Shown piece after piece: positions 30,657 through 36,125 of a stretch of 64,000 nt of DNA (positions are counted from its first letter, which is position 1; each line of letters starts with the position of its first letter). This stretch comes from Macrostomum lignano (taxonomy: Eukaryota), in contig NIVC01003929.1 of assembly GCA_002269645.1 (NCBI GenBank), positions 1 to 64,000 on the forward strand, read 5' to 3'. The translations under genes and the position numbers were made by a program. Under the pieces are notes generated by a model. The model was not told where the DNA came from and did not search any database. It was given only the letters and a program-made list of their open reading frames with translations.

Positions 30657-31243
30657 ATGCCAGTTGAAGCCGCTAAAGAAGACGCGGCAGGCGGCCCGTC
30701 TCTGGACTTGTGGTCGGCCTGCCTGGCGCAGCATGACGGCACCGTGACGGAGCAGCTGAGGCGCAGCGGATTCATCGCTGAAGACGCCGACGGAGCTTCC
30801 AAAGAAGGTGCAGAAGCGCCGCCGTCGAGCTGGTCGGTGGCGACAGCGGACTACGACTGGATCAGCGGCAGGGAGCGCGGCACCCCGGTCAAGTTGACCT
30901 TCGCCGCCGACCAACCCGACGATGCCGACGTTGCGACCGACTGTCGAGACGAATTCTTCAACGCCGTCGAAGATGCCGCTAGCAACGAGGAAAATGGCGG
31001 CTTCTGGTGGCGCTCGCCGCACCATCGGGTCCGGGTTCGATTCCCGGACAAGAGGCTGTGCGAGGCGGCGACAAGCGGCAGCCGGCCGGGCCACCTGCTG
31101 CTGTTCGACCTGTGCCGCATGGCCGCCGCCTGCCTGCACGGGCGGCACCGGAAGGGGCGGCTCCGCCTGCTCTGCCCGGCCGAGCTGCTGCAGCGGGACT
31201 GGGAGCAGCTGGAGGAGCCGCTACCATCATCTCAGTCAGCGAG
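30657..31243 (+). CDS. Predicted exon 1 of a large cGLR/Mab-21 gene (unrecognised domain)
   Basis: ATG at 30657 (MPVEAAKED…) with coding-like GC-rich sequence. A phase-2 donor AG|GTTTGA at 31243/31244 (weak) joins in frame to 32058. Confidence 0.6.
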
Positions 31244-31324
31244 GTTTGACCTTTTGACATTGTCAGATTCAGAATCATAGTCAACTAGCAGCAACATTAA
31301 CAGCAACAAAATGCGCTGCCAGGG

Positions 31325-32000
31325 TCTTTAGAAGGCGGCATTACAAGGCGAACAAAAGCCACCCCGCCGCAAGCCACCCAGTCAGGGGCGCCAGCGGACT
31401 GCCAGCTGGAGTCGCCGACGGCGCAGCAGGTCCGCGAGGATTTGCGGGCTTGCCTGAGCTGCCTTTCGTTCTATGAGAGCAGTCCTGCAGTTCGAGGCCT
31501 TACCTGACCGCCAGAGGGCGGCGTTGTTCCAGGCGGTGATCGAGACTGTCCTTTTTATCACCGCGCCGGCCTGATTCGTCCAAGCGACCTGTTGCGCCGT
31601 CGGCGACTCCAGCTGGCAGGCCACATCATCCGCGCCGAGTCGTACTGCCCAGAGCCGGTGGCAGGAGGTGCTGCTGCTGACGCTGCAGGCACCCTACCGG
31701 CGGGGGCAGGCGCGCACTCGGCATTTCGTCGACTGCCTGCTGGCTGACGCCGGCGCCCCGGATTCGGCCGGCAGCGTGGCGTTCATTCGCGACCTGGCTT
31801 TGAAGCGCGCCTTGTGACGCTGAACGCGTATACTGTTGTTGTTGTTGTTGTTGTTGTTATTGTTGTTGTTGTTGTTGTTGTTGTTATTGTTGTTGCTGTT
31901 GCTGTTGTTATTGTTGTTGTTGTTGTTGTTGTTATTGTTGTTGTTGTTGTTGTTGTTGTTGTTGTTGTTATTGTTGTTGTTGTTGTTGTTGCTGTTGTTG
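31325..32000 (+). mobile_element. Internally deleted RTE-type non-LTR retrotransposon remnant with a (TTG)n tail, inside predicted intron 1
   Basis: About 31583-31817 translates as SDLLRRRRLQLAGHIIRAESYCPEP/QEVLLLTLQAPYRRGQARTRHFVDCLLADAG…KRAL*. This matches the RTE RT C-terminus pattern RRRLRWAGHxxR…RGRP…D. (TTG)n follows at 31834-32000. The 5' boundary is approximate. Confidence 0.8.
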
Positions 32001-32057
32001 AGACTATTAAAATTTTCCCAAGCTTTAAAATTTCAATATCAATCTTTAAAACTCCAG

Positions 32058-32957
32058 GACTCCAGAGCCGCAGCCGCTGCAGCATCGAAGACAGCGGCGC
32101 TATCGTCTGGCAACCCTGCACCTGGTGGCCACCTTCGCCTGCCTGACCTTCTACGCCAGGACCAATGCGGCCGACGAGGTGGACACTGCCGCTCAGGATG
32201 AGGAATCGGACTATGCGGATGCTGAGCTCGGAGCCGAGCTAACCGGAAGTGAGCTGGTCGTGTGCGGCTCTACGGACCAGTTCGATCAGCTCAGCCTGAG
32301 AATCAGCCGCGCGGGTGGCGGCGGCGGCGGGCCGTGGCAGCCGGCGTCCTGCGTGCACTACCGACCAGCCGATCCGGCCGGCAGCGAGCGGGATCTGCAG
32401 CGCGGCATCGAGCAGTGCCGAGGCAGCGGTGCTCTCGTGGCTCTGTTCAGCGAGAGCGAATTGGCCTGGCCTCCGGAAGTAGCGGACGGAACCAGAACCG
32501 GAAAGCAAACCGAAAGCGACAGCAAAAGAAAACGGAGCGAAAGCAGAAGGCGAAGCAGTAAACGAGTCAGCGCAGCCGGAAGCGACCATAGGAAAGTAAA
32601 CAGACGAGAAAGTAAAACCGAACACAAGAGTGACAGCAGAAGGGGAACCGGAAGCGGAACCGGAACAGGAGAGGTAGTTGGCTTTGGCCGCCTGTCCGGA
32701 CACGACATCAGCGGAATTCGGATTGTCCGCCGGAGCGAGGCGGCGACCTTAGCGGCTCCCAGAGTCAGCGTTGTTCAGTTCGACTGCCAGCAGCCGAGCC
32801 GCCAACTTCCGGTAGCCCCCAAAGCGGCAGCGGCCTCGCCAGATCCGCTAATCCGGTCGCTGCTTCGCCTGTCGACTGGCAGCGGTCAGGCACTCCGACT
32901 GCGCTGCCTCCTGGTGCCGTGCGAGAACTCGCTGTGGCTGTGCGGCCGGCTGGCTGT
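32058..32957 (+). CDS. Predicted exon 2 of the large cGLR/Mab-21 gene (unrecognised domain)
   Basis: Acceptor …actccAG|G at 32057/32058 is in frame with ORF 32125-32961. The donor GT|GTGAGC at 32957/32958 (phase 2) overlaps the apparent TGA stop. Confidence 0.6.
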
Positions 32958-33308: not shown

Positions 33309-33382
33309 TTGAATTGCCCAGCAGCGGGGCGGTGGTGGGCAGAGCAGCTCCAGTGGTGACGCGTCTGGTTCTCGAGTATGTT

Positions 33383-33687
33383 CAGGGGTTGTAGCAGAGT
33401 GGTTGGAGCGTCGGACTCACGACTGAAAGGTCGGGGGTTCGATTCTCAATCCACTCGTAACACTTTGTGTCCTTGAGCAAGACACTCAAATCTGCATTGC
33501 TTCAGCTCACCCAGCTGTAAAATGGGTGCCAGCATTAGCTGGGGTAATTGAGGGTGTGTGCGGCGGCCCCCCAGTCCTTGGACTGAACAGCCGTACGCAG
33601 CCTTCAGATGAGACGTGCAATAGCTGCGGCTGAGCTGTCGGTTCCACATCTGGCCATTGGGGCAGGTTAATCAGTTATTATTATTAT
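33383..33687 (+). mobile_element. tRNA-derived CORE-like SINE (copy 2), inside predicted intron 2
   Basis: Aligns end to end with the reverse complement of 6592-6894; A/B boxes, CORE-like block and (TTA)n tail. Confidence 0.9.
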
Positions 33688-34216
33688 CAGGCGTTAGCGG
33701 AATCAGCACGCGGACCGACTGTGGGAGGCAAACTCAACTAAAAACTCACACCTTAGCATGATCCCCTTTTAAATCCGTTTAATTGTACTTCGAATAATAA
33801 AATGGTGCTAGCAGGGATGTGATTTGAACGCGAGGCTTAAGGGAACGAGAGAAAAATCATTTAAAAATTTGAAGCTGCAAACCGGACATTCGATGACCGG
33901 ACTGCGTTCCCTTAGAAGTTCTTCTTGGTGTCAGTTGAAGAGCATCAGCTGTCTGCAGCAGGCTCCGGGAAGAGTTCGGTATTAATTCCCCACACTAAAG
34001 TTTTTTTTGCTTTTAGGGGCAGTTTCGCCTGGGAAAGTCTCCGACTCGAAAATTAACCAAAAGAGTGAATGCGCAACAATTTTAGATTTTGATGTAAAAA
34101 CCTGCGTATACAGACAAGCACAGAGCCTCGAACTTTGTGGAACTGTTTGTCAGAGGAACTGACTAACCTCAGAAAAACTGACTTAACCCGCGCATTGCAC
34201 ACCCCCCCCCCTGTAG

Positions 34217-36125
34217 CTCGGTGGAGCAGGCGGAACGCCAACTCAGTCGCCGGCTCAACCGCCTGCTGTCGCTGGCCGGATTCAACTCGGAGCGGATCGG
34301 GCGGCTCTGCGGCCTCGCCGACTGCCTGGAGGAGCTCGGCAGGGACGTCACGCAGGACGAGCGCCTGCTGGTTGGCAGCCTCGCCGACGGCTGGGGCGCC
34401 AACATTGTGCAGGCCAGCGGCCGGCCCGGGCCGCGCACCGACATCAACTGGCTGCTGCTGCCGGACACCGATGGCACGGGAAACGGCGGCGGAGAGCGCC
34501 GAGGCGGCAGCGCTCGGCAGTCGCTGCTCCATCCCGAAGGTCTGTGCAGCTGCGCCGGGCGGCGCCGAGGCAGCCGGAGCTCGCCGGCCAGCCAGTCGGC
34601 AACACCGTCGCCGCAGTCGGGACCGCCGGCCACTTTGTCTCGGCCAGCTCAGCGCGAGTGGACAGCCTTCCACTGCTGCTGCCCATGCGGCGACGGCAAC
34701 AACAGCAGCGCTGGCTTCGCCGTTTCCAATGGCAACGAGCCGGCGAAGCGGGCGCCGCCACAGAGGCGGCCCAGCAAAAAACCGGCGGATCGGAGGACGT
34801 CGAAGCCGCCGCCGCCGCCGCCGCTGCTGCTGGTCCGCTGGGCTGATGGCCGCCTCCGGCCGGACTGCTGCCTGGCGGAGCGGGCGGCGATGCGCCAACT
34901 GACGACCACGCAGGGCCGCCTGTTCCTGCTGCTGAAGTTGGCCTGCGGCCGCCTGATTCCGGGCCTGGGCTCGCGGCACGCCAAGCAGCTGCTGTTTCAC
35001 GCGCTGGCCGCAGGCGTCGAATCGAGCCGCGTCTGCTCGGACTGGCCAGAGGAGGAGCGGTTGGTTCAGCGGGTCAAGGAGGCTCTGCGGCTGCTGGACC
35101 GCCTGCTGGCAAGCGATGCCCGGCCCGGCCTCAGCCTGCCGCAGTTCTTCGCCCCAGTCGGCGCCGCGGAGGCTACAGCTGGGGCGGTTTCGACCGCAGC
35201 AGAGGAGCCCGAAGCATCCAATGCTGACGACTGGTGGTGGCTGCGGTTCGACGGGCCGGAGGCGGACTCGCTGCTGGCAAAGTCGCGCGCCGTGGAAGCC
35301 CTCGCCGAGCTGCTCGCCAACCCTGGCCGACTGTGGCGCCTCGCCTCCGACACGGTGCGCCCGCTGCCGAGCCCCGACAGTCCCCCGCTGCTGTTCCAGC
35401 CGTTCGCCCTGCTGCCGGCCTCGCCAGAGCCGCCGCTGTTGCGGCTTCGACCAAATTTTCCGCCCAGCTGGTACAGCTTCGTGCACCGCTGCCTGGAGTC
35501 GCTTGACGACAGCGGCGGCGCCATCGGGGCCGCCTCCGACCGAGCGGGGCTGCTGCGTCAGCTGGAGCAGCTGGAGCCGAACTGCGGACTTGCCGCCGTC
35601 TGCCTGACTGCCATGACTCATCTGCGCTTTGGTGACGAGGGCGCCGCCAGGCGCACGCTCTCCGCGTCGCCAGCAGAAGACTGGCGCCCGATCGACCTTC
35701 GGCGCGGTCTGGATGCAGCCGCGGCCGACGCTGTGGCAGCCGGCGCCGGGGTCGATCCACGCCGCCTGTCCGAAGCCGCCGCACAGTTTCCGGCCGCCGT
35801 TGCTGGCCGATTCTGCTTCCGGTTCCGACGGCGGCCGAGCTTTGACTACCTGCCGCACCTGGCCAGACGGCATTTCCCCACCTGCCTGTCCGAGAGGCAC
35901 CAGCTGTACATGTGCAACTTCACCTGCCTGTGGCGGGCGCTCTGCCTGCAGCTGCTGCCGCCCGGAGCTCGACGCCCTGTCGGCGAGGCCGAATGGCTAC
36001 TCAGGCTGGCCGAGGACCCGGAGCCCGAGGAGCTGCACCTGACTGGCAGCTGGAGCCGGGATCCGGCCGCGCTGCGCCGCTGCATCGAGATGCTGAGCCA
36101 GATGGAGCGGGAGTGCGAGCTGTGA
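34217..36125 (+). CDS. cGAS-like receptor / Mab-21-family nucleotidyltransferase-fold exon (predicted exon 3)
   Basis: LVGSLADGWGAN…RTDINWLL matches the hGSxAEG…DxD NTase motif region. CCLAERAAMRQLTTTQGRLFLLLK…SRHAKQLLFH…DWPEEERLVQRVKEALRLLDRLL…LSLPQFFAP matches the Mab-21 C-terminal helical lobe (SFSxAE…LLK…SYHLKT…W…LPHFF.P). There is no in-frame ATG (upstream stop at 34179). Branch point GACTAAC at 34161, a C-rich tract and TAG| acceptor at 34216. Confidence 0.85.

Follow-up and report, generated by a model that had tools for sequence, protein, structure and literature searches.

The question raised by this locus, a 64,000-nucleotide (nt) stretch of Macrostomum lignano DNA (contig NIVC01003929.1 of assembly GCA_002269645.1, forward strand; below, the window, to which all coordinates refer), is whether an open reading frame (ORF) related to the Mab-21/cGAS proteins, which has no start of its own, is the last exon of a longer gene, and what kind of protein such a gene would encode. 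An earlier note, made from the DNA letters alone, had proposed a hidden three-exon gene in which about 495 unrecognised residues are fused to a cGAS-like receptor (cGLR). Its coordinates and arithmetic are confirmed: the three open frames 30657-31243, 32058-32957, and 34217-36125 join in phase with no internal stop, and the recomputed length, 587 + 900 + 1909 = 3396 nt, corresponds to 1131 codons followed by a TGA stop. That these frames are the exons of one cis-spliced gene encoding an 1131-residue protein stands, judged from sequence, at about an even chance. Exons 1 and 2 hold 495 full codons in this model, codon 496 (Val) is split GT/C (the slash marking the exon boundary, here and below), and residue i of exon 3 is model residue i + 496.

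The splice sites and their phases were recomputed and are as the note had described them. Exon 1 lies in a frame open over 30546-31277 and exon 2 in one open over 32050-32958. Donor 1 is GAG/GTTTGA at 31243/31244 and acceptor 1 is CTCCAG/G at 32057/32058; donor 2 is GT/GTGAGC at 32957/32958, and its own TGA is the stop codon of the exon-2 ORF (32058-32961), in the phase that the next exon requires. Acceptor 2, C10-TGTAG/C at 34216/34217, is a phase-2 site in which TAG follows a strong pyrimidine tract, with a branch-point-like GACTAAC at 34161-34167, 50 nt 5' of it. In M. lignano, donors follow the consensus GT[G/A]AG, acceptors read CAG, and those that receive the spliced leader read [T/C]TNCAG (PMC8629364); donor 2 and acceptor 1 match these patterns. 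Exon 2 contains no Met and the earliest Met of exon 3 is its residue 225; therefore both need an upstream start. Because exon 2 is symmetric (phase 2-2), its skipping would also preserve the frame. It should be noted that acceptor 1 sits in a tandem duplication, GACTCCAG/GACTCCAG at 32050-32066, which provides two equivalent CTCCAG acceptors 8 nt apart in different phases, and that a spliced leader ending in ATG would be in frame at two other possible exon starts nearby, 32068 and 32074, which also follow AGs.

The three frames carry a coding signal beyond chance. The forward ORFs of the three GC-rich blocks are 244, 303, and 647 codons long, lengths that were reached by 25, 1, and 1 of 1000 dinucleotide shuffles for exons 1, 2, and 3, respectively. 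The G+C content at the first, second, and third codon positions (GC1, GC2, and GC3) is 0.69/0.54/0.80 in exon 1, 0.66/0.57/0.68 in exon 2, and 0.73/0.58/0.84 in exon 3, so that all three show the coding pattern GC3 > GC1 > GC2 in the proposed frames. A codon-usage log-odds score, for which independent M. lignano paralog genes supplied 3775 training codons, was best of six in the proposed frame for every exon (+0.049 versus −0.18 for the next frame in exon 1, +0.017 versus −0.047 in exon 2, and −0.074 versus −0.17 in exon 3) and was negative in all frames of both intron controls. An antisense ORF of 615 codons lies opposite exon 3 (34053-35900, minus strand); it arises because GC3 is very high in the sense frame, and is not a gene.

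Neither the exon-3 protein nor trimmed fragments of it matched the Pfam families Mab-21 (PF03281) or Mab-21_C (PF20266) even at E ≤ 10, and phmmer with the window protein against PDB sequences returned nothing. When 1.84 billion representative proteins were searched exhaustively with HMMER, 65 homologs emerged, with E-values of 1e-33 to 1e-3, all of which match only model residues ~493-1131 (exon 3 from start to end), with alignments extending to residues 1117-1131. All 30 of those that were looked up are from M. lignano, and UniProt has automatically named several of them “Mab-21-like HhH/H2TH-like domain-containing protein”; the family comprises at least 65 M. lignano paralog clusters at 50% identity (P0002-P0066). 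Mab-21_C was matched by all eight paralogs scanned (20.8-28.4 bits), in three cases above the curated cut-off of 24.1. The window protein was aligned with the modules of 14 paralogs (24-30% identity, collinear throughout; alignment A1), and the profile of this alignment matches mouse cGAS (3.5e-7), Drosophila cGLR1 (4.7e-6), and MAB21L1 (1.3e-4), and the match to cGAS covers the helical lobe. AlphaFold, when supplied with the paralog alignment, predicts a bilobal structure, in which a helical lobe accompanies the nucleotidyltransferase core, with a mean predicted local distance difference test score (pLDDT) of 73 and a predicted template modelling score (pTM) of 0.79, containing four disordered low-complexity inserts. 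The top five Foldseek matches of this model in the PDB are MAB21L1, cGAS, MB21D2, and, twice, MiD51, with probabilities of 0.72-1.0, modest E-values of 0.011-0.36, and target-normalised TM-scores of 0.27-0.49; cGAS 7uyz was matched with a probability of 1.0. Because the paralog profiles and the predicted structure both lead to this superfamily, the assignment of exon 3 to Mab-21, for which the note had nothing but motifs to go by, is right and, on these grounds, exon 3 is a real, very divergent member of the Mab-21/cGAS fold superfamily.

The module shared by the family is ~570-600 residues long and consists of a nucleotidyltransferase-like domain and a conserved helical C-terminal domain; the window contains a complete copy. 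All 18 residues that are invariant in A1 are retained, as are 54 of the 72 positions (75%) identical in at least 12 of the 14 paralogs; the corresponding values are 72% for P0007, 68% for P0022, and 84-96% for typical paralogs. Together with the strong GC3 signal of exon 3, this retention speaks for some remaining constraint. The C-terminal domain shows the motifs W/G-RFCF (W-[RK]-FCF in the family), LP..FP, and Y-x-NF in A1. Its model is largely helical, with pLDDT values of 80-95 in most blocks, and its structural matches are weak and TPR-like only. The note had seen in it a helical extension of ~290 residues; its helical character stands, but it is a domain of ~325 residues conserved throughout the family rather than a peculiarity of this gene. 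In the typical paralog a long ankyrin-repeat array precedes the module, some members carry other N-terminal repeats (Cys-rich helical), and a C-terminal caspase domain is present in two of the eight scanned (P0037 and P0050). The family is therefore multi-domain by rule, and the argument that a multi-domain protein would be unusual because most cGLRs have a single domain does not apply. When the 65 homologs were compared with the 64-kb window by tblastn, matches were confined to 34182-36263, with no ankyrin-coding remnant or further family exon. The part of this interval past the stop codon (36126-36263), a hydrophobic tail in the alignment of P0041, was rejected, as the extension crosses two stops with negligible similarity.

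The strongest new support for the three-exon model comes from the position of the intron in front of the module. In paralog loci taken from GCA_002269645.1, in which the exon junctions were solved exactly, a phase-2 intron precedes an invariant Gly-Phe by 24 residues in P0005, 20 in P0006, 16 in P0019, and 21 in P0023, and in four further paralogs the boundaries of the alignment blocks lie 18-25 residues before Gly-Phe. The window acceptor 34216/34217 is a phase-2 site as well and precedes Gly-Phe by 22 residues. Judged by position and phase, it is the ancestral cis-acceptor of the family, where the N-terminal part meets the module, and its coincidence with the conserved intron site supports cis-splicing to an upstream coding exon. 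Another intron, in phase 1, interrupts the nucleotidyltransferase core ~95 residues after Gly-Phe (72 in P0007) in 6 of the 6 paralogs examined but is absent from the uninterrupted exon 3, so that it has been lost here.

The family signature is GS-x-x-[ED]-G-W-G ... S-D-[IVL]-D ... R-P-A-x-D, which, from the pattern of the motifs, appears to line up with the Gly-Ser, the [D/E]-h-[D/E] pair, and the third Asp of cGAS-type enzymes. Among 56 instances of the motif in paralogs, D-x-D is intact in about 50, and the third Asp is kept in most. The complete triad, [D/E]-h-[D/E]...[D/E], is absent from the window, where the Gly-Ser motif is retained but two of the three acidic residues have been replaced (TDINW and RPAQRE; see the feature table). 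Degenerate active sites are also found in P0007, P0022, and P0036. With D-x-D changed to D-I-N and the third Asp to Arg, the window copy is probably non-catalytic and not an active cGLR; what the note called a cGLR receptor is upheld as to its Mab-21 fold but not as to its catalytic triad. Relative to the human cGAS motif, it presumably also has 10 additional residues separating Gly-Ser from the metal-binding pair.

The same module, end to end (~600 residues, 24-30% identity), is found in the ankyrin/Mab-21-like paralogs of M. lignano, such as PAA49754.1 (P0007), PAA62074.1 (P0005), and PAA61028.1 (P0019), which have in common with the window the 18 invariant residues and the phase-2 intron before the module. 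The window protein differs from them in having an orphan N-terminal half in place of ankyrin repeats, although these are not universal in the family, in lacking the phase-1 intron, in its long low-complexity loop inserts, and in its D-I-N and Arg replacements. With cGAS and the cGLRs (mouse cGAS, 7kxs and 4k8v; Drosophila cGLR1, 8gjy) it shares the Mab-21 nucleotidyltransferase fold and the Gly-Ser motif, but its triad is broken, it has an extra C-terminal domain of ~325 residues, and it has no direct Pfam match. The best or near-best structural matches are MAB21L1 (5eom/5eog) and MiD51 (4nxu/4nxv), which have the same fold and incomplete catalytic residues. MiD51 sets a precedent for proteins of this fold that act as scaffolds or bind nucleotides but do not catalyse; it has an N-terminal membrane anchor, whereas none was found in the window protein (maximum Kyte-Doolittle value 1.21). 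MAB21L1 offers a precedent for a non-catalytic scaffold or nucleotide-binding role (PMC4897736), and its similarity to the window family is seen at the profile level only (1.3e-4). Unlike the window protein, both are single-domain proteins of ~350-460 residues.

Taken together with the gene model, these results suggest the following course, in which the anatomy, family membership, fold, loss of catalytic residues, and conserved intron position are shown and we infer the splicing, expression, and function. Exons 1, 2, and 3 would be cis-spliced, exon 3 supplying one complete module of ~600 residues. In a family specific to M. lignano, this module normally stands behind ankyrin repeats across the conserved phase-2 intron; here the ankyrin part is absent, two orphan and partly low-complexity exons would occupy the upstream position, and the internal phase-1 intron has been lost. 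Since its active site is degenerate, the protein is most likely unable to synthesise a nucleotide second messenger and, if it acts at all, may do so as a non-catalytic scaffold or regulator like MiD49/51 or MAB21L1.

Several observations weigh against a single three-exon gene. Donor 1, GTTTGA, departs from the GT[G/A]AG consensus and is the weakest element of the model, and the codon score of exon 2 is only marginally above that of one antisense frame. Residues 1-495 have no homolog among the 1.84 billion representative proteins of the exhaustive HMMER search and no confident fold, the single-sequence AlphaFold model of residues 1-496 having a pLDDT of 37.5. Paralogs that consist of the module alone exist (P0058, P0063, and P0064), and in-frame AGs 10 and 13 nt past 34216 give exon starts at 34227 and 34230, at which a separate mRNA might begin. 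By word-indexed search, no protein of the transcript-based NCBI annotation of M. lignano corresponds to the locus, and the only database protein that covers it is a chimera, which also takes in a fragment of a repeat, a homeobox gene, and, in antisense, a G protein-coupled receptor (GPCR) gene.

As regards the N-terminal half, a comparison of residues 1-495 with the paralog N termini, with filters off, showed no similarity (best E-value 0.06 in a 65-sequence database), the translations of the exon 1 and exon 2 ORFs contained no Pfam domain and no Ank match, and exon 2 encodes no transmembrane helix (maximum Kyte-Doolittle 19-residue mean 1.21). The description of these residues as unrecognised is thus borne out; their interpretation as an undescribed sensor or effector module, for which a homolog, a Pfam domain, or a confident fold was sought in vain, is not. 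The search for paralogs of the same architecture that had been recommended yielded at least 65 clusters with the module but none resembling the N-terminal half, which is probably coding, orphan, and partly disordered.

The chimera mentioned above is UniParc UPI0007A324AA (P0001), a protein of 1931 residues, which was the sole match when the full model served as query in a word-indexed search. Across the three exons its sequence is 100% identical, and its junctions fall exactly at 31243, 32058, 32957, and 34217. This independent gene model favours the proposed splice sites, and the exon joins were already on record and the gene was not hidden. P0001 adds three pieces of the intron-1 repeat, one of them behind an impossible 7-nt “intron”, bypasses the stop at 36123 via CT/GTGAAG, and runs on into the homeodomain exon 38724-38999 and then into the antisense strand of the GPCR gene; it is a chimeric gene model and does not attest a single transcript. 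The window gene is, then, a divergent, degenerate member of a recognisable superfamily that is already in the database, though mis-modelled. Neither P0001 nor the exon-3 ORF had another copy on record when looked up by exact match in the assembly collection. The exons of P0001 span 30509-44941 and include a further fused ORF, 37193-37522; its start falls exactly at a strong acceptor, TTTTTTTCCAG/, near 30508, and it has a mini-intron of ~50 nt near 30544-30592 (GTGAG...TCAG).

The principal alternative is that there are two genes, possibly in an operon: exons 1 and 2 would encode an orphan protein of ~496 residues ending at the TGA 32959-32961, and a separate Mab-21-like gene of ~630 residues would be trans-spliced at one of the in-frame AGs (34227 or 34230), the leader ATG starting a protein M-[Q]-AERQLSRRL.... 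This reading is possible but on the unlikely side. The 35-nt spliced leader of M. lignano does end in ATG, as had been assumed, and 30% of the genes are trans-spliced and 15% lie in operons, with a repeat-adjusted intergenic threshold of 1 kb (PMC8629364); the gap from 32961 to 34230 is ~630 nt after subtraction of the microsatellite and the tRNA-derived element described below. Family homology begins only at model residues 493-502, and the module-only paralogs have a Met just before Gly-Phe. However, the strongest acceptor, 34216/34217 with its C10 tract and TAG, is out of frame for the leader ATG. The note had drawn its case for cis-splicing from this mismatch, which is correct for 34217 but does not extend to the starts at 34227 and 34230, both in frame; the sequences before these (GGTGGAG and GGAGCAG, respectively) misfit [T/C]TNCAG. 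Two separate genes would also leave to coincidence both the agreement of 34217, in position and phase, with the conserved cis-intron of the family and the embedding of the exon-2 stop in a consensus donor, GTGAG, whose phase is precisely the one needed, and no AATAAA occurs on the plus strand over 30657-33796, none therefore after either upstream ORF.

It is quite unlikely that the locus is a decaying or unexpressed relic, in which exon 3 would be a paralog copy without its ankyrin exons and catalytic residues and the upstream ORFs would be fortuitous. The loss of catalytic residues, the long low-complexity inserts, the retention of 75% of the highly conserved positions as against 84-96% in typical paralogs, the lack of a transcript-based database protein, the orphan N terminus, the weak donor 1, and the fact that 2.5% of shuffles reach the length of the exon-1 ORF would all fit such a relic, and the stop of exon 3 also lies in a donor-like GTGAAG, so that coincidences of this kind do occur. 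Yet an open frame of 647 codons has been maintained with a GC3 of 0.84 against a GC2 of 0.58, 18 of 18 invariant residues are kept, P0007 and P0022, which also have broken active sites, are annotated genes of similar conservation, and the codon score is that of coding sequence for the right frame of exons 1 and 2 but not for the two intron controls. Highly improbable is that the protein is an active cGAS-like immune receptor of several domains, with residues 1-495 as a new ligand-sensing or effector domain and an enzyme that makes a nucleotide second messenger. The Mab-21/cGAS fold is present, most paralogs keep the GS...DxD...D signature, and the fusion of some paralogs to ankyrin repeats or a caspase domain recalls innate-immunity architectures, but the window copy is without two of the three catalytic acidic residues, and its N-terminal half offers no domain, homolog, or confident fold. 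cGAS and STING are, moreover, reported in a review to be absent from another flatworm, Schistosoma mansoni (PMC10855445), and no paper was found that links Macrostomum to cGAS or Mab-21 biology.

With the three-exon, cis-spliced gene as the preferred reading, the stakes of the gene alone are modest: it corrects a chimeric database model and would illustrate cleanly how a Mab-21-like module has gained a different, orphan N-terminal half at a joint provided by a conserved phase-2 intron. The family is a more interesting lead than the window copy. A literature search found no paper on this M. lignano family of Mab-21/cGAS fold. If its enzymes are active, free-living flatworms would have a nucleotide-second-messenger immunity of their own. 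A rather unlikely extension of this idea is that the family forms a diversified repertoire of innate-immune nucleotidyltransferase receptors whose N termini are swapped at the conserved phase-2 intron, the window gene being a product of such swapping, catalytically inactive and orphan in its N terminus, that might regulate, or act as a decoy for, active relatives.

Features of the locus and of the surrounding window (coordinates in the 64,000-nt window)
Feature	Position	Strand	Remarks
Proposed exon 1	30657..31243	+	587 nt; ATG with A at -3, 195 codons + 2 nt; orphan coding sequence
Proposed intron 1	31244..32057	+	814 nt; repeat fragment, inverted repeat, (TGT)n, AT-rich tract, CTCCAG acceptor
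37-nt inverted repeat, 95% complementary	31396-31432 with 31586-31622		intron 1, inside repeat fragment
Dispersed-repeat fragment	31458-31702	+	intron 1; 31458-31523 and 31626-31702 ~80% identical to unrelated M. lignano locus L001:15540-15778
(TGT)n microsatellite	31834-32000	+	intron 1
Proposed exon 2	32058..32957	+	900 nt; symmetric phase 2-2; no Met; Ser/Arg/Lys-rich low-complexity centre
Proposed intron 2	32958..34216	+	1259 nt; (TAG)n, tRNA-derived SINE (short interspersed nuclear element), GACTAAC, C10 tract, TAG acceptor
(TAG)n microsatellite	32977-33308	+	intron 2
tRNA-derived SINE	33383-33681	+	intron 2; 88% identical to second copy, 6593-6894 (-)
Exon 3, first part	34217..35147	+	predicted Mab-21/cGAS-like nucleotidyltransferase-fold domain with four disordered low-complexity inserts
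GSLADGWG	34374..34397	+	nucleotidyltransferase Gly-Ser motif, retained; G53 and S54 invariant in A1
TDINW	34437..34451	+	replaces S-D-[IVL]-D pair; Asn for second acidic residue; column 91 is D in 13/14 paralogs
RPAQRE	34641..34658	+	replaces RPAxD; Arg for third Asp; column 194 is D in 12/14 paralogs
Exon 3, second part	35148..36125	+	family-conserved, mostly helical C-terminal domain (~325 residues), TGA stop
Micro-/minisatellite arrays	7761-8623; 11609-12985; 14661-15936; 17568-18415; 19776-20533; 29451-30280; 36287-36701; 37515-37844

The description of the two introns as filled with retroelements and microsatellites holds for the microsatellites and for the tRNA-derived SINE of intron 2, but the intron-1 “retroelement” is confirmed as a dispersed repeat only. 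The intron-1 pieces have no Pfam match; the peptide of this repeat may resemble the tail of a long interspersed nuclear element (LINE) reverse transcriptase. The other SINE copy scores as a tRNA in Rfam at 6823-6892 (37.8 bits), the sole tRNA-like match in that database, and ARAGORN called no tRNA in the window.

Long micro- and minisatellites are unusually abundant in the window and include (ATAG)216, (TGTC)n over 1.4 kb, and arrays with units of 23, 11, 21, 17, 30, and 24 nt; a distance of 380 nt separates the end of the 17-mer array from the ATG of exon 1, and the 30-mer array begins 160 nt past the stop codon. A purine-rich satellite of 4.6 kb (22812-27441, and also 28215-28662) is made up of ~510 copies of the unit AGAGAGATC and causes an extreme GC/AT skew and spurious ORFs of >500 residues. 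Downstream of the gene, the homeodomain-coding exon at 38724-38999 (plus strand; Pfam PF00046, E-value 6.6e-23) belongs to a neighbouring gene 2.6 kb away. An intron-less ORF of 463 residues at 43604-44995 (minus strand) encodes a rhodopsin-family seven-transmembrane receptor domain (PF00001, E-value 3.7e-10), and an ORF of 452 residues at 48777-50135 (plus strand) matches beta/gamma-crystallin (PF00030) with a whole-protein E-value of 2.4e-9, no single stretch passing alone.

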